Assembly: GCA_024704765.1 (NCBI GenBank)
Contig: JAKMXF010000362.1
Location: 1 to 64,000 of the forward strand
Reading direction: 5' to 3'
From: Oopsacas minuta
Lineage: Eukaryota > Animalia > Porifera
Length of the DNA stretch: 64,000 nucleotides
Positions 1 to 35,915 of the stretch are shown piece after piece. The position numbers and the translations under genes are program-made. The notes beneath the pieces are model-generated. The model saw only the letters and a list, made by a program, of their open reading frames with translations, searched no databases and was not told where the DNA came from. The first letter of the stretch is position 1, and each line of letters begins with the position of its first letter.

Positions 1-29
1 GCAATATCACTTCTTGATATTTGTTCCAT
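1..29 (-). CDS. 5' end of a small Maf-like bZIP gene (copy A1), truncated by the window edge
   Basis: Reverse complement of 1-29 reads ATG GAA CAA ATA TCA AGA AGT GAT ATT GC (MEQISRSDIA). Positions 1-~268 are a near-identical copy of 2925-~3196 (copy A3 start plus upstream region). Confidence 0.8.
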
Positions 30-689
30 TATTCTATTTACTGTTTGTATTGTTTTGTTTTGATTTGAAATTGATTAAACTCACTCCCTATTCATACTTA
101 CAAATAATCTGTCATTACTCCATCAGATAATTCTCTGATTGGTAACGTTTTGGTTAATCTCATCCAATGTGTTAATTCATTCTGTCAGTGAAATTGAAAA
201 TCTGCATTGTTAGAATTTCAGATTAAGAATCTCGGAGAATTGAAAAATGATTAGAAGAAAGTTTGAGATTTTGATTCGAGGATAGATCTCAAACAAGATT
301 GAGGTTTAATTTGTAATCACATTGGTTATTAAGATAGGCGATTATCGAAATACCAATAATTATCCGAGAAATGTGATGTAGTCTAACTAATTCATTGATA
401 GGACAAAGTATTTTCTATTAAATATCAGTTTAATGAACTAAAGACCTTAAATTCGAATAAGAGGGCATAAATATTAATTATGAGTTAATAGAATAAGAAT
501 ATCCATTAAAATTGGTATGATCAATGGTTAGTTAGTAGCCATTAGCTTATGAGGAAGGCAATATCCTTAATGGCAGTAGTGAATATTTGTACTTATTGCC
601 TTTTGAGATACTAGCGACATTGTTAACAGAAATATAGCTGCCACGCCAAGAAATATTAATCCTATTAAGGAAACCTATTTTTGGCTGTA

Positions 690-775
690 TTAACACGTGT
701 TTCAGTGAGGAGGTTGGTCAGGTTTCAACTTGTAAGTTGAAACCTGATCAACCTCCTCACTGAAACACGGGTTAA
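690..775. mobile_element. 86-bp near-perfect palindrome, possible piggyBac-type MITE remnant
   Basis: Arms 690-731 and 734-775 are reverse complements with 2 mismatches. Both ends are TTAA and the right end reads ...CACGGG-TTAA, resembling piggyBac TTAA|CCC...GGG|TTAA termini. The palindrome is certain; the TE assignment is inferred. Confidence 0.5.
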
Positions 776-1424
776 GCATTGTGAAATTGAATCTGACGGC
801 AATGTACAATAACTTGGTAGTCAAATGCACCCTAAACAGACACACGAAAGGAGGATTACACTTCTACAACTTACAAGTCCAGGGAACTATATTGATTTAC
901 CATACATCTACGTAATGCCCAATCAATCTAAGAGTATCGGATTTCTCCCTATAACGGACAAAGACTACCTCTAATGTATTCGATATTCGGAGACTCCACT
1001 ATACCTACATATACGTGTATATATGTATATATATATATATACGTATTACGTACAAGGGCGTAACTGTGGCCGAGCAGTGCTCCCATTTCCCATTCAAAAC
1101 TTTTGATCGCTTGCTACGCTCATTCGTAATATTCAATTAGAGAGAACATTATTTGAGGAGGGTATTGTGTGTCAAGTCATACCAGGGGTGTGCAATCTAC
1201 GACGTGTACACCTCAATCCTCTCATGATCAAGCTAGCAATTATCCATGTTCAAATTTTCAATTTATCTCTTAATCACTTCTTTGGAATCAAACCAGAAAG
1301 TATAACATAGCAGATTAATTCTATGTCAGAGTGATGTATTAGATTAGATTAGACTCATAGCTTTAGTAGCTATTGCAATACCAAATTATACAATCAATTC
1401 AACCTATCATACAGTATCACTTAG

Positions 1425-1432
1425 TATAAATA
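1425..1432 (+). promoter_or_regulatory. TATA box of bZIP copy A2
   Basis: TATAAATA 60 nt before the ATG at 1485, in an AGTATAAATAGG(G)AG context shared with copy A3 (minus strand, 3015-3022). Confidence 0.6.
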
Positions 1433-1484
1433 GGAGACGTTATCCAATAAAAAATCAAATCAATACAAATAGTAAATTACAGAA

Positions 1485-1796
1485 ATGGAACAAATATCAA
1501 AAAGTGATATAGCAGAATTAGACATCAAGAAGCTAAACCTTCTAATAAAGTCAAGTAACATGACTGAAGAAGAAGCTAGAGCTTTGAAGTATTCCCGTAG
1601 ACTTAAGAAGATGAGTCATTACAACAAAGCTCAGCGGGATAAGAAGAAGAGACAAGAACACTCTCTAGAAGCAGAAAGAGAACACCTGCAACAAGAATAC
1701 GATTATATTCTGCAGGAAGTTCAAATGCTGAAAGAGGCAAAGTTAAAATTTGAAGTGATGCAGATTTTAGATAATTTAGAAGAACAATATTATTAA
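1485..1796 (+). CDS. Small Maf/CNC-type bZIP microprotein, 103 aa (copy A2)
   Basis: DIAELDIKKLNLLIKSSNMTEEEARALKYSRRLKKMSHYNKAQR...QEHSLEAEREHLQQE aligns in register with the small-Maf extended homology region, basic region and zipper ([42 protein letters not shown]...QKEELERQRVELQQE). Intronless, three further copies nearby. Confidence 0.85.
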   Translation: MEQISKSDIAELDIKKLNLLIKSSNMTEEEARALKYSRRLKKMSHYNKAQRDKKKRQEHSLEAEREHLQQEYDYILQEVQMLKEAKLKFEVMQILDNLEEQYY

Positions 1797-2120
1797 GCAG
1801 TAATGTATGTAAAAATTTTTAAATATATAAATATCACTTTCTGAATATTTAAAATTGAATTAAACTTTTCTTAATGTATATATTGTATTTATGAGTTGAT
1901 AAATTGGAAACAGCAAAACAGGCAAAGTATATACGTACATGCAAAACCAACAAAACACAATAATTATGAGAGTTCTCTTTCATTAAGTATAAACATATCA
2001 AATATTCTACCTGTAAATAGAGAACAGTAAACTTCAGTTTTAGCAACAAATCTCTGATAACGACACTATTTTTACCCCAGAAATCCGCAGCAGTAGTTTC
2101 TACACACCATACTTCGGGTA

Positions 2121-2405
2121 TCACAACATGTTAGATAACGACACTTCGAATATATCAACACTGTATTTTAATGCCTGATGGATCAAAATCAAGTCGGATA
2201 TTACGACTTGGGAGCATTTGTACTGTAATGCAGGTATGGTTTCCGTATCTGCAGGAAGGCTTAGCAAAATTCTTATTATTCGTGAATAATTGGGTTCTGG
2301 ATTATCTAAGTACCGTATTACCTCGAATAATAACCCACCTCGATCAAGTTCGCTAACATTAAGTCTCATTATTATGAACAGATTCTTGGTCCCGTGGGGT
2401 GTCAC
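2121..2405 (-). pseudogene. Possible degraded hAT transposase C-terminal dimerisation-domain fragment
   Basis: PNYSRIIRILLSLPA...SDLILIH...VDIFEV loosely resembles the hAT dimerisation consensus (PN...L.IL..LP.T...ER.FS...L.LI.IH...DI.EV), but the central ERSFS motif is missing. Confidence 0.3.
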
Positions 2406-2641
2406 AAAAAGCGACCCTGACTATATTTGCAATTGTAGCTTAATATGATATACAATACATGTATTTCGAATAGATTCTTGAAATGACAGGCTGCACTTGC
2501 CCCGTATTTAAACATTAAAATAAAAGGCGTGTAGCTACGAGTCAAAGATCATAATGAGATTGATTATTAATGGAGACTGCAATTTGTTTACAAAAATATA
2601 TCATTAAAATAAGTGAATTTACAAGTTTCAATAATTGCTGC

Positions 2642-2953
2642 TTAATAATATTGATCTTCTAAATCATCTAAAATCTGCATCACTTCAAATTTTAACTTTG
2701 CTTCTTTCAGCATTTGAACTTCCTGCAGAATATAAGTGTATTCTTGCTGGAGATGTTCTCTTTCTGCTTCTAGAGAGTGTTCCTGTCTCTTCTTCTTATC
2801 ACGCTGAGCTTTGTTGTAATGACTCATCTTCTGAAGTCTACGAGAATACTTCAGAGGTTTAGCTTCTTCTTCAGTCATGTTACTTGACTTGATTAGAAGG
2901 TTTAGTTTCTTTATGTCTATTTCAGCAATATCACTTCTTGATATTTGTTCCAT
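2642..2953 (-). CDS. Small Maf/CNC-type bZIP microprotein, 103 aa (copy A3)
   Basis: About 90% identical to copy A2. The true start is the ATG at 2953 (MEQISRS); the ORF-track extension to 3010 starts at a non-ATG codon and overlaps the TATA region. Confidence 0.85.
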   Translation of the reverse strand: MEQISRSDIAEIDIKKLNLLIKSSNMTEEEAKPLKYSRRLQKMSHYNKAQRDKKKRQEHSLEAEREHLQQEYTYILQEVQMLKEAKLKFEVMQILDDLEDQYY

Positions 2954-3014
2954 TATTCTATTTACTGTGTTTGTATTGTTTTGTTTTGATTTGAAATTGA
3001 TTAAACTCACTCCC

Positions 3015-3022
3015 TATTTATA
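3015..3022 (-). promoter_or_regulatory. TATA box of bZIP copy A3
   Basis: Minus strand reads AGTATAAATAGGGAG, about 62 nt upstream of the ATG at 2953; same context as copy A2. Confidence 0.6.
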
Positions 3023-4462
3023 CTTGCAAATAATCTGTCATTACTCCATCAGATAATTCTCTGATTGGTAACATTTTGGTTAATCTCATCCAATGTGTTA
3101 ATTCATTCTGTCAGTGAAATTGAAAATCTGATTTGTTAGACTTTCAGATTAAGAATCTCGGAGAATTGAAAAATGATTCGAGAAGAAAGTTTGAGAATTA
3201 GAAACTGGGATAGAACATTCAATTGTGGTTTCGGTTGATTCAATGCCAAATCGATTCGATATACTAAATGTTAATTAATTAATTTTCAGTAGATGTATTA
3301 CTTAATTATTCCTCTTACATTTACAGTTACTCTAATCTAAGTTGAACAGTGGCATAAACCATGGCTAAGTCATGGATTATAAGAAGCAGCATCAACTACA
3401 CTGTGCCGGTCGCGGTTGTGTCATATTGTCTAAATGCCAAGTTTATGCCAGGTTCACTCAGTGAGCAAACGGTGCATGTGCCACCAGTTAAGATATTCGT
3501 GCCCAGTGGCCAGGCCTGCTAGATCATCGGAACAGCACTACCATAACATAATCTAACACTCATTGATTTTGCCTCGGTTTGAAAATCCTGCCCCTGCCCC
3601 TGCCTACCAAGGTATGTCAGAACCTGGGCCACCACGTTCCACTGGGTTCACTCAAATTCGCATTCACACTAAGTGCATGTTTATGAAATACAGACAGTTC
3701 GCTATATGTACAATTCGCAATCTCTGCTACACGGACAGTTCACTACAGGAAAAACTTTATTCATATGAATGTACACCAGCAAGAGCTAGGATGAGGATGT
3801 AGCGTCTGAAAGCATGTTAGTAGAAATGACAAAAATGCCTTCAATACATTGATGAGGTTTGGAATTACACACATTTTCAAATTTCACGCTTTGCTATGTA
3901 TGCTTGTACGATTAATTCACTGCTGATAGGAAGCTGATAATAATTAGCGAGGAAGATGGTTTACAAGATCCTAGGGCGATCTTGAAACCACTAAGAAAGA
4001 AGTAATCAGAATATTCAAAATTTCAAGGAAAGATGAAAGAATTGTAGAAGATTGCTTGGTAATGATACTAGACACATTATATATTCACAAATGTGTGTTA
4101 AATAATACAAAAATTAAATATTAGTAAGGCGGTTATAGAGTAGATGTTTACGTTGAGAATTAGTTGGAAAGTTGACTTGTATCTAATGAGTGATAAATTG
4201 TTTCGGACAGAAAAATAATAATTAGCCATTAATTACAAGATACTTATCCTCGTTTCAAATTTCAAATTCGCTTCAAAATCGTGTTAGACTCTCAAAACTC
4301 TAAAAGTAAGGTTGAACAAAGCAAATTAGCATATTTTGATGACACTAACGTTACAAACATCTCACAGCGAAATTATAAACCGGTGCTATAGGGGGAAAGT
4401 ATATATTGGTTAGAACGAAAGTTCGATGACAAAACAAATCAATACAAACAGCAATTACAGTA

Positions 4463-4774
4463 ATGGACCTGGAGACAAGTGATATAGCAGAAATTGACAT
4501 AAAGAAACTCAACCTCCTAATCAAGTCAAGTAGCATGACTGAAGAAGAAGCTAAAGCTCTGAAGTATTCTCGTAGACTTCGGAAGATGAGTCATTACAAC
4601 AAAGCTCAGCGTGATAAGAAGAAAAGACAGGAACACTCTCTAGAAGCAGAAAGAGAACATCTCCAGCAAGAATACACTTATATTCTGTAGGAAGTTCAAA
4701 TGCTGAAAGAAGCAAAGTTAAATTTTGAAGTGATGCAGATTTTAGATGATTTAGAAGATCAATATTATTCTTAG
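4463..4774 (+). pseudogene. Small Maf-like bZIP copy A4 with premature stop
   Basis: TAG at 4688-4690 where A2 and A3 have CAG (Gln). The frame continues with intact homology (EVQMLKEAKLNFEVMQILDDLEDQYYS) to a TAG at 4772-4774. Confidence 0.8.
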
Positions 4775-5951
4775 CACCATTTATAGGACAAATATCTTAG
4801 AAACATATTTATTCACTATACTTGCAATGATATATCATCTGAAAGGCTCACAAGTACAAATGACATTAAATATTAGAAATAGATTTTAGTGAATTAGTTA
4901 TATTTATGAGTGGAAAATAGCAGCAAAAAAAATACGTGTATTTCCCATATAAGATATGAATGTCAAAAATATATTAAGAAGGATAGGATATAGTATTAGT
5001 ATTAGTATTAGTATTAGTAATTTAGCGCTATTAAGCCAAGCATCCACTAACCGACCTGATTAGAATAATTATATTTCTAATATACAAATAAGCTTGACTA
5101 CTACTGTACTAGCTAGTACAGTAAATAGTTACTATGACAAGATTTAGAATAGCATAGAGTCAACTTTTGTTAAACGGGCGGAGAAAAGTATCCATAAATA
5201 TATCTACATTTTGCAATTTTGGTGTTGGAATGAATTTCTTCGTGACTAGTAATATCATATCCAGGGGCAGATGGGGAAGCTACTGAAGTTATCATAATCC
5301 ACGTGAAGTAATTTGGTTTATTCAAGTAAAATTCCCCTTAAAGACCTGTAACTGTTGACAACTAGATTCATTCACTTTTCACTAATCAATTGTCTACTTT
5401 CTGAATTATTATACTTTCAAAGTAATTACAAATTGTTGTTGAAGAACTTTGGGCATAAATAATTCGAATTTTCATACAAGTATAATATTTGTAGCTAAGT
5501 TAAGATATACAATAATCAGAGTTTAGGATGTTTACATGCTTGTTAGAAAAGATAAACCATTATTGCATCATGGCCTATAATAAACAATTAAGATATCAAA
5601 ATATTAGAACTAACAACTATTCAATTGGTGTTTGCTTGGTGAAAATGTGTTTTCTAATATTTATAACCACCAATAATTGCATCCTTTTGATAACATATTT
5701 AGTCAATACAATTATATAAGTGTTTCACCATTGGTGGAAACAATGTGTAGGTAGGTAATACATATAACATTAGCATGCTGGTCCATAAGGCTACTGATAA
5801 GTATGCTACTCAAAACGATCTAAAAACAACAATTAGTAAAGAATACAAATACTATGAGAACTTAAATTCTAAGACGAATTTCCTTGAAAAGAAATGTCTC
5901 ATCGATTGGTCCGAATAAGACTGAGCTCTTCCCATTCTAATTTCTTAAATC

Positions 5952-6230
5952 ACGAGCCTTTAGTTCGTCGCATTGCGCATCGAGGTATCAATAATTCTCC
6001 AAATTGACGACCCCTTTGAGTATTGTAATATAGATATATTTAGAACAATGTAATTCACAAATATACATATATGGCATATATGTATTATTGAATTATTTTG
6101 TAAGATTAACCCCCTTTGTAGCCGTTGAAGGCAAATATCCACGTAAATTTTGTGATTTTGCTAATTTGTTTCCTTTATATCCATAAAACAACAATATATG
6201 TTTACATATTCACGGACAAACAAATAAGAA
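5952..6230 (-). mobile_element. Helitron-like non-autonomous repeat, 3' portion
   Basis: Close match to 51387-51650; begins with the reverse complement of the terminal ACGAGCC hairpin. Confidence 0.6.
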
Positions 6231-8206
6231 TTAAGATTTGATAATACAGACGTTGTTTACAATACCATATTTGGATTCATCATACTCGATTATTCTAGTA
6301 TAGTCGTTGAAAGTATGATTCTACCTCAATATTGAAATTTGTTTACTTTATATTCATAAAAACAACAATAAATTTAAATATGATTAATCCCTAAATTGTG
6401 GAATTTAGATTCAGCCTGTTCAATATATATTTAAGGCAGTTTTATTGAATAGGTTATCCTAACCTTGCTTTATATATTAGAACTCAGTTAGTACGTAGCA
6501 ACGTTTTATCCCGATGAGGTACATCCTATCCGAGTTCTACTGTGCTTTTAAGTTGTTGCTTGGATAACTGAATCAGTGAAAATCACTGTTCGAGTACATA
6601 TGAAGTTGAAGACTTTAGATATTTGGAAAATTTCATTGCATATATTCACAAATATAGTATAAAATGACCCCAGAAAAATAGCACTGATGTAGTTTGAATC
6701 TCTTTTGAGGTAAAATATTGATTATTGCATAAGAGGATACAATTCTAAATTTTAACATAGTCGGGAAGCTACAAACTTTCAACTTACCAGGAAAATAACA
6801 AATTCAAGGATACAATAATTCCTAGAAAATACATATCCCTAACAATCCTTATGTGAGTAGGAAGGATTCGTTTGCATAATACAAACATATCTACAAAAGT
6901 AGTTGAATAGACATATATGTTTAGGAAGTAATTAAATGTTACTTAAGGAGATGATAGCTACAAATACTGGTTTAACAAGATAATGATATTTGTCCAAGAT
7001 AAAATTCTCAAAAAAACAAAATAGAAACCAAAATATATAATAATTTATACATCAATTACTCACAAATTTGCATTGTCACACTCAGACCATCTGGAGTTCT
7101 GGACATACTAGATGGAAAGAGTAGGTAGATACACATACGTGATAATCCAGATAAACACATTCAAATTATCTTATGTGCCCATTTTGTTTATGAGAAGATA
7201 AATACTGTTCACGTACAATTTGATACAGCTTATTCATTTATGCGAAATGGTGTGGGTGACTAATTTGGATTGTCGTTGCAGTAAATCAAATATTGTTGGG
7301 TTGCTAGAGCCAGTACGCTAATATTCCTGCTTTCGTTAACCCTGCACTATAGAACTGATTTTGGCTACGTACGTGTATGTCTATAAGTGAAATGTTATGA
7401 CCATGAATACTGTGTCAGAAGTTATAGTGATAATTATTCGCATGTACTCGTGAGATAGAATATCAAGTAATACACTCTCACATATTTTCTAATTTCAGTT
7501 CCCAATTAGATTTTGCAATTTATCTATCACTTCAATATTAATAAGTGAATTATGATTCTGTAAGCTAATCGATTATACAATTTCGTGCTAAACATACAAG
7601 TAAGTTGATTTATTTTAATATGTTAATTCAGTAATAACCACAATGAAAATTCCGATAATTTCTTGATGATTGATTCTACCTGAAGTATTACTTAGAAGAG
7701 AAGTAAATGCCATTAGAACATTATTGAGATAGCTTAGCAGTATACACATACAGTTAACCTCACTCCTATGATATATCATTCACAATTATTGTATATTGAT
7801 TTTTGTGACATAATTAATTTGTACAAACATATTTATACTGAGGTACAAAATAGTCCCGTGTTTCTGTTATCTACAAGGGATCTGGATACCTAAACCCCGG
7901 GAAATGACCCAGACTGAAACAGAAGTAACAAACAAAGTGATTATGGATATACCGAGATTGTGATGGAATAGTAACGTGAAAGGCAGTAGGTTTGACAATT
8001 TGTACAAGTTAATGAATGGATTAATGATAAATTATGATAAAGCAAGGGCAAGTATAAAGAAATCTCCATTTATTGAATATTTGGTAACTGATGTCTTAGA
8101 TAACCGAATAGTAGGTAATCTATAAAAGCCAATACATAGATATAAATATGTTGGTGATAACCAAACGTCAGCACTCAAGATGCTCCCAATCTCCGAACAA
8201 AATACA

Positions 8207-24510: not shown

Positions 24511-26427
24511 TATGTCACGTAGCTAACTATGTGACGTAGCTAACTATGTCATGTAGCTAACTATGTCACGTAGCTAACTATGTCACGTAGCTAACTATGT
24601 CACGTAGCTAACTATGTCATGTAGCTAACTATGTCACGTAGCTAACTATGTCATGTAGCTAACTATGTCATGTAGCTAACTATGTCATGTAGCTAACTAT
24701 GTCACGTAGCTAACTATGTCACGTAGCTAACTATGTCACGTAGCTAACTATGTCACGTAGCTAACTATGTCACGTAGCTAACTATGTCATGTAGCTAACT
24801 ATGTCACGTAGCTAACTATGTCATGTAGCTAACTATGTCATGTAGCTAACTATGTCATGTAGCTAACTATTCACGTAGCTAACTATGTCATGTAGCTAAC
24901 TATGTCACGTAGCTAACTATGTCATGTAGCTAACTATGTCACGTAGCTAACTATGTCATGTAGCTAACTATGTCACGTAGCTAACTATGTCATGTAGCTA
25001 ACTATGTCACGTAGCTAACTATGTCACGTAGCTAACTATGTCACGTAGCTAACTATGTCACGTAGCTAACTATGTCATGTAGCTAACTATGTCACGTAGC
25101 TAACTATGTCATGTAGCTAACTATGTCACGTAGCTAACTATGTCATGTAGCTAAATTCATGAAAATTAAGATTGGACCTTAGCAGATAAATGTAATCAAT
25201 TGAAAAATATCAAATCACCGCCTGTGTCTACACCAGATTCAGTGTAATTTGGTACCCCACATGTCTGTTGAGAGAAAGTCTCTATCATATTAAAAATTGG
25301 GATTTGTTTACTTTATATTCATAAATCAATAAATTTACACATGAAAAAATGCGAAAATTCGTATTCAGCGTACTTGCATGTTGAAACCTAATCTCTAGCA
25401 TTTTTTGAAATTTACATAGAAATGTATGGAATATGATTAATCACCTAAAAGGTGTGAATATATACACATCAGAAAATTTAAGTGTCAGGTGCAAAACTAG
25501 ATGTCACTACGAGTATACATGCCAAATTTCGAGCCTTAATCTCCAAAGGTGTGAACAGGAGAGTGAACACATATATACATATACATATACAGGACTCTCA
25601 ACTATCACGATTTCGGGTCTACATTACAGCAGAATCCCTGGTCTTTTCACAGAAAAGAAATACTAAATTGCACTTCTCACGATAGAGATTGTTGCCGAAT
25701 CTTATGATTTTGAAGGTATCCAGGTTGAGAGCCTGGATATATACCAACCGACTAAGAAAATCAACCACTTTAGAACTGTGCCAGTAGAACCTCTATAAGT
25801 GGGGGAGGTCGGGACGGCGAATCTCCTGATAACCCCCGTTATAATATCAACCTAAAATGTCCTATAAAGAGAGATTTTTATTCAATATGTATAGCTACTT
25901 GCTCCAACGACTGTTTTTCAATGATATTTGATTATTTTAATATGCCCAAAGGTTATTGATTGAATATATAAATTAGAAATATAATTTCTTCAAAGAAACC
26001 CCTCTTATTTAAATATTCATCATAGCGATAAATACGTTTGTTTTCCAAATTTAGCTATTGAAATTTACCTATATAAGTGGGGAATTCTACGAATTGATCG
26101 TAGAATTCTTCACTTATATAGGTAAATTCAATGGCGTGAGGCATAATTATCTCTAGAGTATCCCCCATTCCCCATTCCCCGTTTATAGAGGTTCGTTTCT
26201 ATAGAAATGAATGAATGTAGACAAAAATTGCCTGGCTTATAGAGGTTGAACTATAGTATAGTCGGCACAGTAAAAAGACTTATGTATTGGTCATATAAGT
26301 AGTTACGAATTATGTAATGGTTGGTAAGACCAAAACTAAGTCAAAAATTTAAGATTTAATTGAATTAATACACATTGAACAGCTAGTATATCTTCCTTCA
26401 TAACATCATTAGTTGGCTGATACTCTC

Positions 26428-26994
26428 TTAATGTGCCTTAGGAATGTGCCCATCAACATAGAAATTGCGTGTCACTCTTGGTAGTGAGATGAACATACCT
26501 TGCATGTCACGAGTTAGTAATACCTGACACCCCAGACGAGAATTACTCTCCAGGAAGGGAGCTAGATCCAGGAGATCTTCTTCCTCATCAGTAGACGGTA
26601 ACAATACGCTGAAGAACTCAGGCTGTATGTATACGTGACAAGTTGTACAAGCTAGAGAGGCATCACATGCTCCTTCCATTTCTATGTCATATCTGTGAGC
26701 TAGGGAGAGGAGGTTCTCTCCGATATTACCAATGACTGGGACATGGTTACCGTCTCGATCTATAAATGTGACTCTCACTGACTCATTGAACTCAAGTTGT
26801 TCATCTCCCCTTAGACGAAATGAAGTGTGGATAGCTCGATAGGGGGAATATGTGATAGGGAAACAGGATAATTGGGGAGAGTACTGGCAAGCGAGATGTA
26901 TTGATTTGAAGTTATAGCTATAAAGTGATGCTGTGTGTATAAAGAAAGCTCTCTTGTATGATATACTTCGTGAGAATATACGACATGTATTCAT
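26428..26994 (-). CDS. FDX2: Mitochondrial [2Fe-2S] ferredoxin 2, 188 aa, intronless
   Basis: Presequence-like N-terminus, EGACDASLACTTCHVY, SRLGCQ and C-terminal TRNFYVDGHIPKAH typical of FDX2. Confidence 0.93.
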   Translation of the reverse strand: MNTCRIFSRSISYKRAFFIHTASLYSYNFKSIHLACQYSPQLSCFPITYSPYRAIHTSFRLRGDEQLEFNESVRVTFIDRDGNHVPVIGNIGENLLSLAHRYDIEMEGACDASLACTTCHVYIQPEFFSVLLPSTDEEEDLLDLAPFLESNSRLGCQVLLTRDMQGMFISLPRVTRNFYVDGHIPKAH

Positions 26995-27229
26995 TACAGT
27001 AATCTAGTGTGAGAAATATGATTGTAAAATATTTGCCTATTAAATGCAAGTACACGGTCAACTAATATAGAGTAGAACTCGGATAAGACGTACCCTTCGG
27101 TAAACAAATTAGTACTTACTAACCGACAGTATGTACGTCATAATTATGCGAATTCTTCCTACACAATTAGTTCAAGAATAGAAAATACTTTTGGAGAGAA
27201 TCACATACTAACCGAGTTATGAGAAACTG

Positions 27230-27543
27230 AAAATGCGAAATTCTAATTCAGCGTATTGTGTTATCCCTGCGTAGCCGTTTAGAGCAAGCCTGTATTATAT
27301 TTGGGATTTGGCTAATTTGTTTACTTTACATTCAGAAAAACAACAAAACATTCGATTAATCCAAAAGTGTGAAAATCGCATTCATCATGTTTGATATATT
27401 AAGTGAAGTTTATTGAATTCTATTACTTCCTTGATAAATACGATAAATTCATAGTTATGCGACAATTTAAAATTGCATACCGTAAATCCCTTCCTTAACA
27501 ACGGACAAACAAACAGACAACAATTGAGATTTAATAATATAGA
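27230..27543 (-). mobile_element. Helitron-like repeat, 5' portion
   Basis: Minus strand begins A|TCTATATTATTAAATCTCAATTGTTGTCTGTTTGTTTGTCCGTTG; matches 36531 and 40323. Confidence 0.6.
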
Positions 27544-27653
27544 TTTAGAAAGAATAGATTCCTATGTGTTACAGACAAATTAATATTCATGCAAAACCAG
27601 GGTAACCAGAACTTCCTGCCCCATTGATGATATCTGAGTTGTTTTGACAGTAG

Positions 27654-28772
27654 TTAGTACCTTCTGAATCCATTAAATGTGTTTTTGTAATTTTCTAAAA
27701 GAGGTCGAGTTATCAAATCAGTTTTTCTAGAATTCTTCCTGCTTCTTATAATCAGCACGACAATGATGTTTATGCTCAATACTAAGTAAATAACAATCAC
27801 TAACACCTCAACAATGAAACAACATATCAGCTCAATTATCAGTAGATATTTTCCTAATGAGGTTGTCACTTCTAGGAGCTGTTTTGAGATTATTATGTTA
27901 GGAATCATACCAAAAGAAAGGTATCCTAAGAAACAAGGATTATAAGATAAAATCGCTGCAGGCACTGCAATGAATGTAACCAATCCAGTACTTAATACCA
28001 GCGAGAAGATAAGCAATGTGAAAATTTGAGCATAGAAGAATCGTTTCACTATCCCTTTACTTTGTAAGTATTGAAATTGAGTTGAATGTAAATTTGCTGA
28101 ATTCATATTTCCTTTAAGCAGATTGTAGAATTTTTGTGAGGTAGATATGTAAATACAAATATCAATCAAACCGAAAGGAAAATATAGGAGATGTTCAAAG
28201 TAATGTGTCTGCATGAAGCTTGATAAAATTATCTTTACGAGAAACTGTAATACAATGTATATTATGTATTTCCGTATGTGTTGCTTGTAAGGATAATTGA
28301 TAAATAATCTTCTTAATATTACGAAAAACAGAGACATAATTATCGGGAACATTGTCCATATAATGATTCCAAAGCTGCGTATTCTTTCAACCAGAAGAGT
28401 AGATTTATCTAATAGAGCAATCAATGATGGATCCCTTATCACACAGGAGTGTGATATATTCGCAGGATTGGAGACTGTATCGTTGAAATCATATCTAGCA
28501 ATCTGAGCAGTTTGTACAGAAACGTTTGCAATCAATTCCAATACAGAAAGAGTTAGAATGAAGTTGTAGATTATTGATTTTATTCGGAAATTAGTCAATA
28601 CTTCATTCAAATCGACTCCAACCATTGGTACGGCGGATGACAGCTTCCTCATTTCTATCCATATCTTATATTTTAGAAAAATGTAATATGAAATTACGAT
28701 TGGTACAGATATGATATATGGGAATATTATCAGTGGACTCAGTTTGGTTATGATTTGATAGATAAGAAGCAT
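27654..28772 (-). CDS. Orphan multi-pass membrane protein, about 7 hydrophobic segments, 372 aa
   Basis: Long AT-rich ORF with about 7 hydrophobic helices, a loop carrying N-glycosylation sequons (NDT, NIS) and a basic C-tail. No family recognised. Confidence 0.7.
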   Translation of the reverse strand: MLLIYQIITKLSPLIIFPYIISVPIVISYYIFLKYKIWIEMRKLSSAVPMVGVDLNEVLTNFRIKSIIYNFILTLSVLELIANVSVQTAQIARYDFNDTVSNPANISHSCVIRDPSLIALLDKSTLLVERIRSFGIIIWTMFPIIMSLFFVILRRLFINYPYKQHIRKYIIYIVLQFLVKIILSSFMQTHYFEHLLYFPFGLIDICIYISTSQKFYNLLKGNMNSANLHSTQFQYLQSKGIVKRFFYAQIFTLLIFSLVLSTGLVTFIAVPAAILSYNPCFLGYLSFGMIPNIIISKQLLEVTTSLGKYLLIIELICCFIVEVLVIVIYLVLSINIIVVLIIRSRKNSRKTDLITRPLLENYKNTFNGFRRY

Positions 28773-29690
28773 TTCTAATAATCTACTCTGTGGAATTGGC
28801 CTTTATCAAGATTGAAACAATATTCTCTATATTTATATCAGTGCTCCAATTGCATATATGTTCTTAGAGCTGGAACATCTTATCGACATTCTCGTAAGCA
28901 TTATATATTCCTGAATAACATCTGCTTTGTAGTGACCATTTCCTGCGTATCTCTTCATTGATACAAATCAGGAACAATTTGCAAAATTATTGTCTTATAA
29001 ATTTCTAGTTTTAAAATCTTAAATGTATACGTGTAATAAGTATTTTGTCCACACATGTAAATTGCTGAGAAAACCTTTATGTAGATGACCTACCATAATT
29101 GTATTATTTTCAACAGTTCTCAGTTTTCATGATTTTAGACTAACTTCCTCATTATACTTTTTACAGCATGTGTCCAGATAGAATAATTGTGATACTAGAG
29201 AACATGGCTAAATTTGGCATTATTATTAGTTTAACAGAATGGTGGAAAGTAATACATAGAGCATAGGTTCCTAACCATGTCGCCCGTTGAACCCTTATAC
29301 CAATTACAACATATTCTCTGGGACCGCAATACAAGATTAGAGATCAAGTGGACCCCTTCTGTCTTCCACCCAGGCATAGATTATGCGAATGGAACGATAG
29401 ATATTAGTTGTACCAGATTAATTTCTTTACGACCGCTAATTGAATAATGTCCTTTGAATAATTAAGCCAATGAATGCATCCAATTACATATGTAATTAAA
29501 CTATTTTCTAGTAGATTTCTGCAAACTACCTAAAGTAACATTAAAGAGTTTATTAATGGAATATTGAATTCTAAGTTGACTAACTCATAGAAAAATAGAC
29601 ATGTATTATCAAATATTTAAATGAATTAGTCGACCAAATACCGAAATAAGATAACATCCATATTATTCGAGTATCTACTTAATGCAAACC

Positions 29691-30186
29691 TCATAGCATT
29701 TCATCAACTCCAAGGGAAACGTCAAACTTAGCGGCAACTTCCCACTGACTACTATTTTCACCTTCCCTCAATATCTCTAACTTCTGTAAAAAGGTTAGAT
29801 TCTTTGTGGATTTTGTTGAAGACATTGCGATGATTTGTTTTAGATAGACAGACCAAAGATTTGAACAAAATGTCTTCTTCATACAGACAGTGGTATATGT
29901 ATTCTTAACAAACAATGGGAAATGGCATCCATTTCATATAAACAATTGTCATTCCAATAATCAGCTTCTAAAGAACGAAACAAACATCGATCACACTGAT
30001 CCCCATAAACTGTGAACAAAATACATCCTACTGACTGTCATGTTGATCTCCACGAATTATGGTAAACACTTATGTTATTTAATGGGAGGTCCATAAGTGA
30101 TATTTGGGACACAAAAAAGTGTTCCCTGTTCACTATAGGGAGGTGTTTTTTAATCCGAGGTGTTCCCTAATGGAGGCTTTATTGTA
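29691..30186 (-). mobile_element. pogo/Tigger transposon remnant (CENP-B-type N-terminal HTH plus terminal repeat)
   Basis: KNLTFLQKLEILREGENSSQWEVAAKFDVS resembles the pogo/CENP-B N-terminal HTH. The minus-strand end TACAATAAAGCCTCCATTAGGGAACACC resembles Tigger-type TIRs. Confidence 0.55.
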
Positions 30187-30293
30187 TATAAAAGATACAT
30201 GCTATCACTCTAGTGCTGATAAATATACAAATCTATTTGTATGCAAACTAGGAATAAACATGCACAAACATACACTAATTGTCCAATTACAAA

Positions 30294-31808
30294 CTAAAAT
30301 TTCTTCATCATATCAGATTTAGCTTTCGTCTGATACATAACGTTCTGAGACAGGTTAGCATCAGGAACAAAATTAGCTCGTTGGTTGTAATAGTTCTGTG
30401 CCATGTTAGCCATCCTATTGCTTCCATAACTCGAGTAGCTCTGCTCATCCTCCATACCTCTGAGACAGTCTGCTAGATCGATTAGCATAGCCTTGCAAAG
30501 AGGGTCTTCTGCTGTAACCGAGGATTTAACTTGTTTCTCACAAGCAGACAGAATATCACGCCCTTTCTCAAATTCCCCTGCCCTAGCCTTCTCTCTGGCC
30601 TCCTTTATAGCATTTGTTATATTGATCCTGTTCCTTTCCTTGTCTATAGTAGGATTGCTAACACGTGGCTTTCCAGTATTAGTTCTTGCTACTGTTAAGT
30701 CTAGCTTAATAGTTTCTATTACAGCATTGATAACGTTAAAGTATGCTAGTGCTACTGAACAGTACTTAACATCTCCTGCAGCTGCAGGAGAGACAGGCAG
30801 TTTAAGTTCCATCAAGACATCTCTAGTTTCTTCTGACTGTAAGTCTCCTAGCGTTACTTCTACTCGTGTCCTACCCTCGTTATATTTCGGCTTATTCTTA
30901 GCTGTAAACTCCTTTACTACACATCCATTCGTTATCTCTACAGTCATAGTAATGTTCTGCCCTACAGTAGAGAGGAGACCTCCCAGACAGGAAGCGAATG
31001 ATTCTGGAACTTTCTCTAGTGAGTCAATATAGTAATAGGCACCATTACCCTGATTACTGATCTCCTCTAGGAGACTAGCATTGTGATCATTCCCGAATCC
31101 AAATGTGTACACAGTGCCTTCAAAATCTCCATCTGGGTGCTTCTTGTCAGCTGGTTCAAGGGGAGAGGCACCTCCTATGTTAGAACAATTAGTGTTAGGC
31201 AAGAAATCAGTTGACATCTGCTGCGGCATCATCATATCCATACCCTCACTCTCTAATGCATGAGCAGTATAAGGTGTTCTCATAGCTCTCAATATTCCAT
31301 CCTGGCTACTGATTCCAACATTAGCATGTCCGTCTGTAAGAAGCAGGACTGATGCTACGTCTGCTTTATCGCCTGCTCTCTCTATCACCATCTGAATACC
31401 TTTTAGCAAACCTCCACATAGGTTAGTACTACCACAGGTTTCAACTGAATTAATCTTATTCTCTATCTGTAACTTGTTTATTGAGGTTATCTTTGTTAGA
31501 GGAAATATTTCACATATATTGTCGTCAAATACGATTAGTGCAAGTCTGTCGCAAGCAGCTAACTGTGAAACCACAAAATGGAGCGTTTTCTTTACCAAAT
31601 CCAGTTTGCCTCCATCCATAGATCCGCTACGATCAATAACTGCTACCAGATCTACGGCAGCTCGCTTATTGTCCTCTTCCTCAAAGATAGGAGCTTCTAG
31701 CTTAATGTCTACCCAACATGATACTTCCTTGCTCGGATCATACTCCTGGTATTCATTCGTTGCTATAAGTTTTATCTTGTTTTCGGTTGGTTTCTCTACT
31801 ACTGCCAT
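30294..31808 (-). CDS. VWA-domain protein with C-terminal Vwaint-like helical region, 504 aa, intronless
   Basis: MIDAS DRSGS, GSTNL, LLLTDGHAN, YTFGFGNDH, GLLSTVGQN, and C-terminal ERNRI...AREKA...QNYYNQRAN. Confidence 0.85.
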   Translation of the reverse strand: MAVVEKPTENKIKLIATNEYQEYDPSKEVSCWVDIKLEAPIFEEEDNKRAAVDLVAVIDRSGSMDGGKLDLVKKTLHFVVSQLAACDRLALIVFDDNICEIFPLTKITSINKLQIENKINSVETCGSTNLCGGLLKGIQMVIERAGDKADVASVLLLTDGHANVGISSQDGILRAMRTPYTAHALESEGMDMMMPQQMSTDFLPNTNCSNIGGASPLEPADKKHPDGDFEGTVYTFGFGNDHNASLLEEISNQGNGAYYYIDSLEKVPESFASCLGGLLSTVGQNITMTVEITNGCVVKEFTAKNKPKYNEGRTRVEVTLGDLQSEETRDVLMELKLPVSPAAAGDVKYCSVALAYFNVINAVIETIKLDLTVARTNTGKPRVSNPTIDKERNRINITNAIKEAREKARAGEFEKGRDILSACEKQVKSSVTAEDPLCKAMLIDLADCLRGMEDEQSYSSYGSNRMANMAQNYYNQRANFVPDANLSQNVMYQTKAKSDMMKKF

Positions 31809-33656
31809 TTATCTGTACAATTGATTTATACTTGTATTTACTCAAATTGATATTTGTATACGTTTGTAAAATTACGTTATATAATGGTATATAATATTAT
31901 TATAGAAGATCCTATTATTTCTATAATTAAAATATACAGTATCATTAAATATGTAATTCTAGTAGATGTATTGAAAGTCAGTGTGCATGACAATTGCACA
32001 TTCAACCCAGTGTGCCATATAGTGGAAGGTGAACTTTTCAATACCTCACAATATGTATCTAAGTTTACTAACTCAATGAATTACTCAAAATTCAAATGTC
32101 GATATTCAAATAAATTTCATTACATCTTGTTCAAACTGAAATATCCTGTAGATATAAATGCTAAGATGATATATTACAACCATTTTATCTGATCCCTCTT
32201 GTTATGTTAGAAATTTTGGGTAATTCATGTGTTGAATAATCCAATATTCTCTGCCATTTTCAATGAGTTAGTCAACTTAGATGTGCATGCTGCACACTCG
32301 ACTAACTCGACTTAGTGTTGCTTCACACCGGTTATGACCAGTGGCGGATCCAGGAATTGTTGGTGGGGGATAATTATCCAGTCGGCGGTCTGGGGGGTGC
32401 TGTAGGCCCCCAGTGAGATCCGGGGATGACAAGCCCTATTTACCACAAAATTCGTTGCCATTCTACTCTCAGGTAACTTCGAATCTCGAAATTATTTCTC
32501 TTAATGGCGTAATAGACATTTGGAATGGAAACTTTTCGATTGACTTTGTAAGTCATTATCTCATTGTATAACTTGTAAACTTGTATTACTTGTGTACATT
32601 GCAATTTTGAAATAAATTAGCCACGCATAAAATTGTTTCAACGTGGACGAAACTTAACCATATCAAGTGTTGTCTTGCTCATACTGCTTGTACAGACCCA
32701 CAGTTACAGTTCAAGCCTTTCCATCCTTAGAATACAATATATATACCTGAAATGGTAATATAACATGATCTTTAGGGAAAGATGCGAGCTAAGCGAGCAG
32801 AAATTAATGGTTTGGAATTTGAGGCAATATTTCAATGTGTTGGCATGAATTTCCAATTCCACTATGATTTCATATCCTGTAAATTACTCTTGGTCTCCTC
32901 TGGATCCGACATTTCACTTCAATGGTAATTAATGTGTCAACTTTGTGTCCATTTATAAAGTTTTAAAAATTCACCTAGAAACTTTCCCTCTCTAATTTTC
33001 GATCTCCTTTTCCTGGCTAGAGGGAGGTAGTTATCCAGCTGAAAGGTGGTCCATATAATATTAGCGAATAGAATGATGAAAAGCATTTATCAGGTGTTAC
33101 TTGATATTTTATTGATTTCGCTACAAAACTAAGAAAATTGTGATTACCACCCAAAGAAAAGTCATAACAAATGCTTGACAACTGTCTTTCTATATTTTTC
33201 TGTGATTTACAAAGCTAAATAAGCAACAAATAACGAATTTGAAATTTCGTCAGGTTCTGTTCCGTGAAATAGAGAAGTCCAACAGCTGATACAGCATATT
33301 TCTTACGTCGATATACATAAATTCTTATTTAATGCAACTGGTTCGTCTGACGAACATTACAGTGCAGGTGGGACTGTCACGCTATATTTCGTCCGGTCGG
33401 CCTATTTATAGCTGCGGACCAAATATAGCATGATGCAGAACCCTCCATAGCGCCATACATGGTCTTGACGGGGCATACATATGATCCTGAAATACAATAT
33501 CCCTGCTCTAAGCGGAACCCTTAGACATTAGGGCCAATCCTGATGCTTGGATAAATTCAAGATCCCTGTACTGTCCAGGGGTTTGCATTTGCATGTTCGA
33601 TTAGTTTTCCAATTAAATTCCATTTCTGATGAAACTTTCAAAATTCCTAATTTAGA

Positions 33657-34577
33657 ATGATTCAGCCCTCACTTCACAACTTCATACAGAAAGAGTCCCC
33701 TGAGGTTAGCTCCAGCCGGATGGGGTCTATGGAAGGAGAGGTATTGGCGCCTAAAGGTGTAGCAGTTGATAAGTATACAGATAACATATATGTAGCTGAT
33801 GAGGGGAATAACAGAATACAGATGTTTGACAGGTTAGGAGATTACCAGTTCTCATTCGCTAGGTACAGCTCACGTAGTATGCCCTACGGTATTAAGGTGT
33901 TAGAAGGATTAGTATTTGTAACACAGTACAGTGGTAGGACTGTGTGTATCTACACGACAGAGGGTGATTTTGTGAGCAATACAGTATATAGCTCTCTCTT
34001 CTGGCCTACTGGAGTGGAGGTAGAGATTACTCCTGAGGGAGATTTGTGTCTGTATGTTTGCTCATCCGCCACCAGTTGTATATTTGTACTCAGTAACAAT
34101 GGAAACAGAGTTATGGAGGGAACTACTAGAGGACAGTTTATACAACCAAAAGATGTGAAGGTATTACAAGATAAATTGTTTATATTAGATCTACGTGACC
34201 CGTGTCTCCACGTGTTCTCTCTAGAGGGTGTTTATCAGAGAAGTATGATCAGTAATGGTATAAGTAGAGATGTAGCAGGTCCTCTGTTTTTCTGTGTAGA
34301 TGAGTCTGGGTTTCTTATTATAGGAGACAATCAGTCTAGTAGTGTTAAGGCATTCTCACTAGACGGAACACTCCTGCATGAGGTAGGTGTACATAGTCGA
34401 GATAGTGGGAGGTTTGTGAGGAGTTCCTCCCTCATGAGTCATCTCGTACACTTTGGTATGAGCTCTAGAGTGTCAAGAGAGGGACTAGTGAAAACTCCGA
34501 GAGGAGTAGCACTAGACTCTAAGCAGAGATTGGTAGTTATAGGACTGATGAAGCAGGGATGTTTGCAGATATTCTGA
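33657..34577 (+). CDS. Stand-alone NHL-repeat beta-propeller protein, 306 aa
   Basis: PKGVAVD..NIYVADEGNNRIQMFD, PYGIKV, PTGVEV, PKDVKV, PLFFCVD..IIGD and PRGVALD repeats. Confidence 0.88.
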   Translation: MIQPSLHNFIQKESPEVSSSRMGSMEGEVLAPKGVAVDKYTDNIYVADEGNNRIQMFDRLGDYQFSFARYSSRSMPYGIKVLEGLVFVTQYSGRTVCIYTTEGDFVSNTVYSSLFWPTGVEVEITPEGDLCLYVCSSATSCIFVLSNNGNRVMEGTTRGQFIQPKDVKVLQDKLFILDLRDPCLHVFSLEGVYQRSMISNGISRDVAGPLFFCVDESGFLIIGDNQSSSVKAFSLDGTLLHEVGVHSRDSGRFVRSSSLMSHLVHFGMSSRVSREGLVKTPRGVALDSKQRLVVIGLMKQGCLQIF

Positions 34578-35915
34578 GGACTTCCAATTATTTGGACATT
34601 CTTTATATAATTTGTATACATTTTTAACACTATGGTCATATCCTTAGTATACTTTCCGAGAGAATATTTTACGAAGTTCTGCTATGTAAATTGTACGTAA
34701 CGTTTCTTTGTGTGAACTATCATAATGTATTGGGGCAGTTTCTCTCAGATCCCCTTTCTTTAGCTAATTCTAATTATCTATAACACTACTGCTAAAGTAT
34801 TATTTTTGGAATATACTTGTAATACATTATCTGGCCATCAATTCGATATATGTCATCAACTCATTGAAATATATAAATTGTATCTGATTGATCAGAACAA
34901 ACTAAATTGTCCTGAACAGGTGTACTCAATTTTGGAGTCTGCTGATTTCATTTATTGTAATCACGTGTTATACTTCTTGGGTACTGTCAAATTAGCTCCA
35001 CCTTCCTCATCAAGTTTTCTGCCGCTCATAAATATTGCCATTAATTCACCATATACAGAATTCAACTACAGAATATATTTACTAACTCAAGTGATTTAAA
35101 TCCTAATGTACTAATAATGTAATAACACTAGTGGGTAACGCTTATAAGAATATCAATGCATTTTTGCCATTACTAATTTCTAACTCAGGATTTTAGTTTG
35201 ATCGAGTACTTCGTATGCTCGTTAGCTATGCTCAATCTAACGTGCAATTAACAACATTGCTTAAGCCAGGAAATATTACAGAATATACACACCCACGTAA
35301 CTATAACCTGTTCACTGACCATATTTTCCTGTACCATGGATATACTGTAAGTTTATTAAATTTGCTTGGCAATTTTAAATATTCTCGATAATATCGAATT
35401 GAATTTTGGCTTGAATAAATGTATTATTTTTGATAGATAATAATCAACACATCATCCAACAAGTCCCAGTTCTTAAGACTTCATCTGTTTGGTTAAAAGC
35501 GCAATATGTTGTTAATAATCTCCTCATTAAGATCGGAGAAACGATCACTAGTGCGTCTTTGATTTCAGAATTACTTATCAAGTGATCTGAGGATGTTTAT
35601 ACAAAATATACAATTTTTGTTATCATAAAGTTGTCACGTTATTGTTTTATACTATATACCATGGATGGCACATTTTGGGCCAATATCCACTTATAACTCG
35701 ATTGTCGCTGAAGTTGTAGTTAAATCAGTCCTGATAATATGTATTACATACCTAACCGCGCCCACATGCTCATATGGGCATCATTTGAAGCTGAAACAAG
35801 TCTCTCATTAACAGGGGCTTATTTATTTATTCTATATCTGTTATTCCGAAGTCTTGTTATTTCCCTCGAGAGTTCTAATTAACGGATTGTGAACATGAAA
35901 ATATTCAGCTATTAG

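Follow-up and report, generated by a model that had tools for sequence, protein, structure and literature searches.

The closest described counterparts of the genes reported here are the small Mafs (MafF, MafG, and MafK; Pfam PF03131; structures 3a5t, 4auw, 4eot, and 7x5e), in which an extended homology region (EHR), a basic region, and a leucine zipper are combined without any activation domain. Small or altered subunits that could poison dimers are known from the CHOP/DDIT3-type inhibitory bZIPs and from plant and animal microproteins, and in these the DNA-contact region is degraded or absent. Few DNA-contact residues of eukaryotic transcription factors are as conserved as the Asn and Arg of the bZIP basic region. 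In MafG, Asn61 forms a hydrogen bond to the flanking C, Tyr64 packs beside Asn61, and Arg57 reads the flanking G (PMC9756947). When 896 eukaryotic bZIPs, with no hexactinellid among them, were surveyed, deviations of only three kinds were named for the Asn and Arg positions, and the Asn position differed in few lineages (PMC4736632). A lineage-specific set without this Asn is found in the oomycetes, whose bZIPs with Cys at position 13 "appear to be functional", as far as they are described in the work cited there (PMC4736632). Exchanges of the same Asn have been tested directly in the viral AP-1-like bZIP Zta, where the hydrophobic N182V and N182I exchanges abolished sequence specificity on unmodified DNA and improved binding to 5mC-containing DNA, and N182Q and N182S gave new specificities (PMC8756438).

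In the window, i.e. the whole stretch of 64,000 nt from the glass sponge Oopsacas minuta that was analyzed, we found a multi-copy array of small genes, which we term mini-Maf genes. Their products of 103 aa share with the small Mafs the succession of EHR, basic region, and zipper, the ungapped alignment of the latter two, the Maf-specific Tyr with the preceding Arg-Arg, and the absence of an activation domain. They differ from small Mafs in that they read MxxYNxxQR in place of NxxYAxxCR, have only 5 residues ahead of the EHR, carry a 2-residue insertion within it, and are encoded in an array. They are also not orthologous to the small Mafs of bilaterians, whose origin is placed after the split of cnidarians and bilaterians (PMC4736632). 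Unlike the CHOP/DDIT3-type proteins and the microproteins, the family has an intact and highly charged basic region, which is its most conserved segment. The oomycete bZIPs, as far as the cited description goes, belong to another eukaryotic supergroup, are full-size proteins outside the Maf type, have no EHR, and carry another replacement residue. The Zta mutants are single substitutions that did not include Met, without the Ala-to-Asn or Cys-to-Gln changes and in a protein that has neither EHR nor the Tyr.

The genes of the array alternate in orientation, with a repeat unit of about 2.9 kb that consists of a head-to-head pair and has coding arms that are 91-96% alike (Table 1). A1 and A2 form an inverted repeat with arms at 1475-1804 and 2634-2963, and the region upstream of A0 (42-255) is a direct repeat of the region upstream of A2 (2968-3181), to which it is 97% identical. 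In A3, codon 76 is TAG, and the other copies have CAG at this position; A3 is thus probably a young pseudogene or gives a truncated product of 75 aa. The dN/dS of A3 versus A2, 0.30, is the highest value within the family.

Table 1. Positions of the mini-Maf gene copies, of the parts of copy A1, and of neighboring genes in the window.
Feature	Position	Strand	Remarks
Copy A0, first 9 codons (MEQISRSDI)	1-29	-	tblastn; runs off the window edge
TATA box TATAAATAGG of A1	1425-1434	+	60 nt upstream of ATG; read from sequence
Copy A1, intact intronless mini-Maf gene	1485-1796	+	ATG-to-TAA ORF, 103 codons, CDS including stop
EHR of A1, residues 6-34	1500-1586	+	aligned to MafB/MafG EHR, DIKKLN versus SVRELN; two short helices ahead of the long helix in the model
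Basic region of A1, residues 35-56	1587-1652	+	gapless alignment to Maf; holds M43, Y46, N47, Q50, R51
Motif RRLKKMSHYNKAQR of A1, residues 38-51	1596-1637	+	within the basic region
Leucine zipper and C-terminal helix of A1	1656-1790	+	register as in MafB zipper; unbroken helix to residue 102 in the model
Copy A2, intact 103-aa paralog	2642-2953	-	tblastn; 92% identical to A1; K41Q and A33P
TATA box TATAAATAGG of A2	3013-3022	-	sequence; upstream alignment
Copy A3, paralog	4463-4774	+	tblastn; 88% identical to A1; in-frame TAG at 4688-4690
Methyltransf_16 gene, 216 aa	8337-8987	-	long uninterrupted ORF; adjoins the array
Abl-interactor gene (ABI, HHR and SH3), 734 aa	11173-13377	-	long uninterrupted ORF; adjoins the array

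A1 matched the Pfam profile PF03131 (bZIP_Maf) over residues 5-85 with 38.3 bits, compared to a gathering cut-off of 22 (E 2e-9), and judged by this score the match is far above chance. A2 likewise passed (E 1.1e-8), and all 13 aligned family members matched the profile, with a best E of 8e-11. In a phmmer search of the PDB sequences, A1 found MafB (E 4e-4), MafA, and MafG, and not Nrf2 or NF-E2. The alignment has its one gap, of 2 residues, in the EHR and none in the basic region or the zipper. The leucine zipper follows the basic region in the fixed register of Maf: LEAEREHLQQE of A1 lies on LEKQKAELQQE of MafG, the distance of 10 residues from R51 to L61 is the same as in Maf, and the d positions L61, L68, I75, L82, and F89 are spaced by 7, at equivalents of L, L, L, L, and Y in MafB. 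The a positions, which were read by hand, are R65, Y72, V79, and K86 versus K, V, V, and R in Maf. According to a hand analysis, the g-e' pairs of an A1 homodimer include one attractive pair, E78-K83, and no repulsive pair, and homodimerization of A1 appears plausible.

The AlphaFold2 model of A1, a single chain built on the alignment of 13 family sequences, had a mean pLDDT of 90.9 and showed helices at residues 6-11 and 14-23, followed by one long helix at 28-102. When the PDB was searched with this model using Foldseek, ranks 1-12 were all chains of MafA, MafB, or MafG, with TM scores of 0.62-0.81. The corresponding E-values were weak (3e-3 to 0.1), as the fold is little beyond one long helix, and we therefore place weight on the fact that the top 12 are all Maf chains. 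The ancillary helices of the EHR are thus found N-terminal to the basic region by the HMMER alignment, by the modeled helices, and by Foldseek. By profile, fold, and the Tyr hallmark, the A1 family is a Maf-type bZIP domain. The Maf homology, the gapless alignment, and the preserved zipper register had been proposed in a previous sequence-only reading of this DNA, and all three were confirmed by the comparisons with MafB and MafG, the homology by sequence, profile, and fold. A lack of profile support, by which that reading could have been refuted, was not observed.

In the family, several residues at DNA-contact positions are exchanged. Residues 38-51 of A1 (RRLKKMSHYNKAQR) align without gaps to the basic region of MafB and MafG in HMMER, and with respect to Maf, Asn is exchanged for Met (M43, nt 1611-1613), Ala for Asn (N47), and Cys for Gln (Q50), with Tyr (Y46) and Arg (R51) retained. 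In MafG numbering, Arg56, Arg57, Lys60, Tyr64, and Arg69 are kept, and the replacements are Asn61 to Met, Ala65 to Asn, Ala66 to Lys, Ser67 to Ala, and Cys68 to Gln. Of the Maf signature N-x2-Y-A-x2-C-R, only the Y and the R therefore remain in the M-x2-Y-N-x2-Q-R of the family, and of the bZIP pair of Asn and Arg eight residues apart, only the Arg. The feature that distinguishes Maf from CNC proteins, a Tyr at the first Ala position after Arg-Arg, is present, as all 22 sequences have Y46 and R38-R39. With Lys or Arg at 11 of its 22 residues, the basic region of A1 is highly charged. The three readable copies, which start at 1485 (+), 2953 (-), and 4463 (+), have the stretch KMSHYNKAQR in common, and RRL is followed in them by K, Q, and R, respectively. 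The exchanges with retention of Tyr and Arg, their identity in three copies, and the K/Q/R variation had all been noticed before, and the alignments bore them out; the reported Ala-to-Pro change corresponds to A33P of the copy that starts at 2953 (-), the third one if the truncated copy at the window edge is counted.

Relatives were collected from other assemblies. A word-based search gave 15 clusters, all with PF03131, and cluster look-ups gave about 40 distinct relatives in at least four other assemblies. Loci were taken from four ENA assemblies (ERZ25071281, ERZ25766962, ERZ20067936, and ERZ26869290), and arrays with alternating gene orientation are present in each of them. A Methyltransf_16 gene adjoins the array in ERZ25071281 and ERZ25766962, and in ERZ25071281 an ABI gene does so as well; with the same neighbors as in the window, the locus is syntenic. 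Since dS is saturated between most assemblies, the related assemblies do not represent the same organism.

A comparison of dN/dS across related species had been proposed together with the sequence-only reading. In a codon alignment of 22 sequences, the pairwise NG86 values were 0.05-0.19, which indicates purifying selection. M43, S44, Y46, N47, A49, and Q50 are invariant in all 22 sequences, and R51 is kept in 21 of them, the exception being one damaged copy. The codons of kept residues have turned over at the same time, with four codons each in use for R38 and L40, two each for Y46, N47, and Q50, and six for R51. Mean dN was 0.063 in the basic region, 0.231 in the zipper, and 0.239 in the EHR, and 15 of the 22 columns of the basic region are invariant among 19 distinct intact proteins. 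Judged by these substitution patterns, the basic region is the most constrained and slowest-evolving part of the protein. In the nucleotide tree, the window copies group together as sister to a clade with His45 and Tyr45 subtypes, which predate the split of two assemblies, and an older paralog group branches below. As the window copies, the subtype clade, and the older paralogs share the recoded signature, the signature predates all splits of the tree. Fragments and damaged copies were found as well, namely A3 in the window and several among the relatives, and the family therefore turns over by birth and death.

Some further arrangements were seen in these assemblies. Genes with KMSHYNKAQR and ...KEAKL alternate with genes with KMSYYNKAQR and ...REAKF within one array at loci L001 and L006 (ERZ25071281 and ERZ26869290); the window array holds the His subtype only. 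An older and more divergent head-to-head pair of paralogs of 106 and 114 aa, which carries the same M-Y-N-Q-R code, lies at L002:9107-10318 of ERZ25071281, on the same contig as the main array and 340 kb away from it. This type of pair recurs in BUSC20-1 metagenome scaffolds and in the Logan run SRR11455651 (loci L008-L012).

Among 1.84 billion protein cluster representatives, only 27 proteins matched a profile built from the family at a cut-off of E <= 1e-3. Most of the matches besides canonical Mafs were proteins of 97-129 aa with the same EHR-basic-zipper layout, nearly all of them aligned without gaps. The weaker matches included the canonical Mafs, namely a MAF from an arachnid and two proteins about 240 aa long. 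In the resulting set of about 25 mini-Maf cluster representatives, the residues equivalent to R56, R57, K60, and Y64 of MafG hardly vary. The Asn position is occupied by Met in most mini-Mafs and by L, V, I, R, S, or A in the others, and the remaining contact positions occur in at least 14 combinations. Going by the aligned residues, the retention of the flank-reading Arg and Tyr together with a lineage-dependent variation of the core-reading positions is the pattern that would be expected of a diversifying DNA specificity. The window family clusters with two of the representatives, P0016 and P0017 (support 0.97), and the canonical Mafs are separate (0.94). The M-Y-N-Q-R code is common only to the window clade, P0016, P0017, and P0021. 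By this sequence-based grouping, the window family is one clade of a larger mini-Maf radiation. The only two named mini-Maf members, the Oopsacas minuta hypothetical protein KAI6646577.1 and a Trinity transcript of Vazella pourtalesii, point to glass sponges as the home of this radiation.

One of the canonical matches, the Cordylochernes scorpioides MAF of 453 aa (P0018, UYV72550.1), consists of three near-identical tandem copies of the whole canonical Maf domain and is probably a tandem gene array that was fused by annotation.

Several aspects support the view that each mini-Maf is a gene of its own. The start and stop positions of the ORF are conserved across at least four other assemblies, which identifies the mini-Maf as a stand-alone single-exon gene. 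A TATA box of the type (G)TATAAATA is located 55-75 nt upstream of the ATG in all window copies and in nearly all copies of the relatives. The alternative of a larger spliced gene was rejected, as ATG, stop, and upstream TATA box are conserved at every copy. The compact and intron-poor gene layout of the window fits the published description of the O. minuta genome. In the A0/A2-type promoters (42-255 and 2968-3181), a CCAAT-like box (TTACCAATCAG) and a TGACAG are shared just upstream of TATAAATAGG; as both are conserved in the matching copies of two other assemblies (L001 and L006), they may be regulatory.

A possible hint at expression came from four runs of one sample, which were mapped as contigs on positions 1-6000; a look-up of RNA runs for this DNA gave none. 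In run X2, the library type of which is not on record, the summed contig depth reached 25,000-42,000 over 1401-1800, about 1,200-1,500 over the other two copies, and 0-200 in most flanks, with adaptor-joined contig ends at 1472 and 1480. The other three runs showed an even, DNA-like depth with at most an about two-fold excess over 1401-1800, and copy number was therefore rejected as the cause of the X2 peak. The X2 pattern suggests abundant RNA, which we treat as a lead only, because contig depth is a poor measure of expression. The Trinity transcript from V. pourtalesii belongs to a related mini-Maf. In the spacer between A2 and A3 (3001-4400), a GC-richer patch at about 3361-3800 contains short ORFs, and the X2 depth of 196-490 in this spacer, which is several-fold above that of distant flanks, may reflect read-through or an unannotated transcript.

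With modest confidence, we regard the mini-Maf protein as a dimeric Maf derivative without activation domain that would bind a site other than the MARE and would act as a repressor or as a partner subunit. Each mini-Maf gene is a single-exon unit, probably transcribed independently, that encodes the DNA-binding module only, consisting of the EHR helices, the basic region, and a zipper of five heptads. The protein would dimerize through this Maf-like zipper with itself, with paralogs, or with other partners of the Maf/CNC type, and it would bind DNA through the basic region. There, the kept Arg39/Tyr46 pair corresponds to the Arg57/Tyr64 pair that reads the flanking GC in MafG, and Arg51 sits at the conserved Arg position of the basic region. 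Met, Asn, and Gln take the place of those residues with which Maf reads the flanking C and the core half-site, so that the expected site should differ from the canonical MARE. In the manner of a small Maf, a protein of this kind could either occupy sites as a repressor or serve as the DNA-binding partner of another subunit.

The sequence-only reading had considered the family to be either a factor with a new DNA specificity or a dominant-negative partner. In the latter case, mini-Mafs would dimerize with canonical Maf/CNC or other bZIP proteins to complexes that fail to read the proper site, and would thereby titrate their partners in a CHOP-like or microprotein-like fashion. Maf/CNC partners are conceivable because the a/d pattern of the zipper is Maf-like, and a very small protein without activation domain that has lost the near-universal Asn, a position at which few lineages differ among 896 bZIPs (PMC4736632), would be suited to this role. 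As N182V and N182I deprived Zta of its specificity on unmodified DNA (PMC8756438), Met43 could mean a lost rather than a changed specificity. However, a pure sequesterer needs its zipper only, and it is the basic region that is about four times more constrained. The base-facing residues are fixed across saturated synonymous distances, the positive charge is fully retained, and related lineages have fixed other residues at the same positions instead of showing decay. The lost or degenerate DNA-binding region of a microprotein is likewise not seen in a segment with 11 Lys/Arg in 22 residues and a dN of 0.063 versus 0.231 in the zipper. We thus consider a titrating function unlikely. As the basic region is the most constrained part and its changed residues are fixed across deeply diverged copies, the comparison of the sequences leans towards a functional basic region.

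A functional basic region could in principle also have been re-used for another ligand, such as chromatin bound non-specifically or in a methylation-dependent manner, RNA, or a protein. Its strong conservation, with residues unlike those of any known bZIP code, would be compatible with such a change, and so would the finding that hydrophobic residues at the Asn position raised the binding of Zta to 5mC DNA (PMC8756438). Yet the family matches DNA-bound Maf structures in its EHR, its Arg/Tyr pair, and its spacing to the zipper, and no positive evidence speaks for another ligand, which makes a re-use of the helix rather improbable. That the ORFs are non-functional, being decaying duplicates or a repeat family that resembles Maf, is scarcely credible. 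The premature stop of A3 and the damaged copies and fragments in related arrays would fit such a decay, but the low dN/dS (0.05-0.19) at saturated dS, the preserved start, stop, and length of the ORF in at least four other assemblies, the conserved TATA boxes, and the gene neighborhood in common with other assemblies all speak against it; on these substitution data, the selection analysis effectively refutes it. The re-specified dimeric factor is favored because the new residues are fixed, the positive charge is complete, the constraint is strongest in the basic region, and sister lineages have fixed other residues. Taken at the level of the aligned residues, this appears to be the pattern of a re-specified DNA recognition rather than of a decayed binding surface.

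For the radiation as a whole, a more far-reaching scheme can be put forward very tentatively, and we hold it to be possible rather than probable. Glass sponges may possess a private radiation of minimal Maf factors, in which the Arg-Arg...Tyr anchor and the EHR hold the helix on DNA, Met substitutes for the near-universal Asn, and the next four contact positions have diversified into the at least 14 lineage-fixed combinations, each of which would read a different half-site. As the Zta N182V and N182I variants bind 5mC-containing DNA better, the Met may read a methyl group, either of thymine or of 5-methylcytosine, which would make these proteins methylation-sensitive readers. The M-Y-N-Q-R family of the window would then be one specificity class among several.

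In the literature on bZIP or Maf proteins of Oopsacas or hexactinellids that we searched, no description of a mini-Maf radiation was found, and neither bZIP nor Maf is mentioned in the published O. minuta genome paper. In a paper on Aphrocallistes, a single bZIP is named, which is uncharacterized and up-regulated in the osculum. The mini-Maf radiation is thus apparently undescribed. To the extent of this literature, the term "undescribed" of the sequence-only reading holds, with the amendment that the family is not unique, being one clade of a larger radiation. In the family and the surrounding radiation, the Asn and neighboring contacts have been replaced, and strong purifying selection has since preserved the new residues. 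Mini-Mafs can therefore be seen as a natural experiment on the extent to which the recognition code of bZIPs tolerates rewriting on an unchanged scaffold, and their DNA specificity would also be informative about gene regulation in glass sponges, which are syncytial animals of an early-branching lineage.

A few observations concern the DNA of the array itself. Rfam and tRNA scans of positions 1-8000 detected no structured RNAs. Simple TA-rich repeats are located at 1006-1050 and 4984-5026 of the window, and the contigs of all runs break there. A near-perfect inverted repeat of 42 nt with a spacer of 2 nt lies between A0 and A1 (690-775), and the contigs of X1, X2, and X4 jump 56 nt (694-751) across it. 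This skip could be due to a length polymorphism of the hairpin, to excision, or to an assembly artifact.
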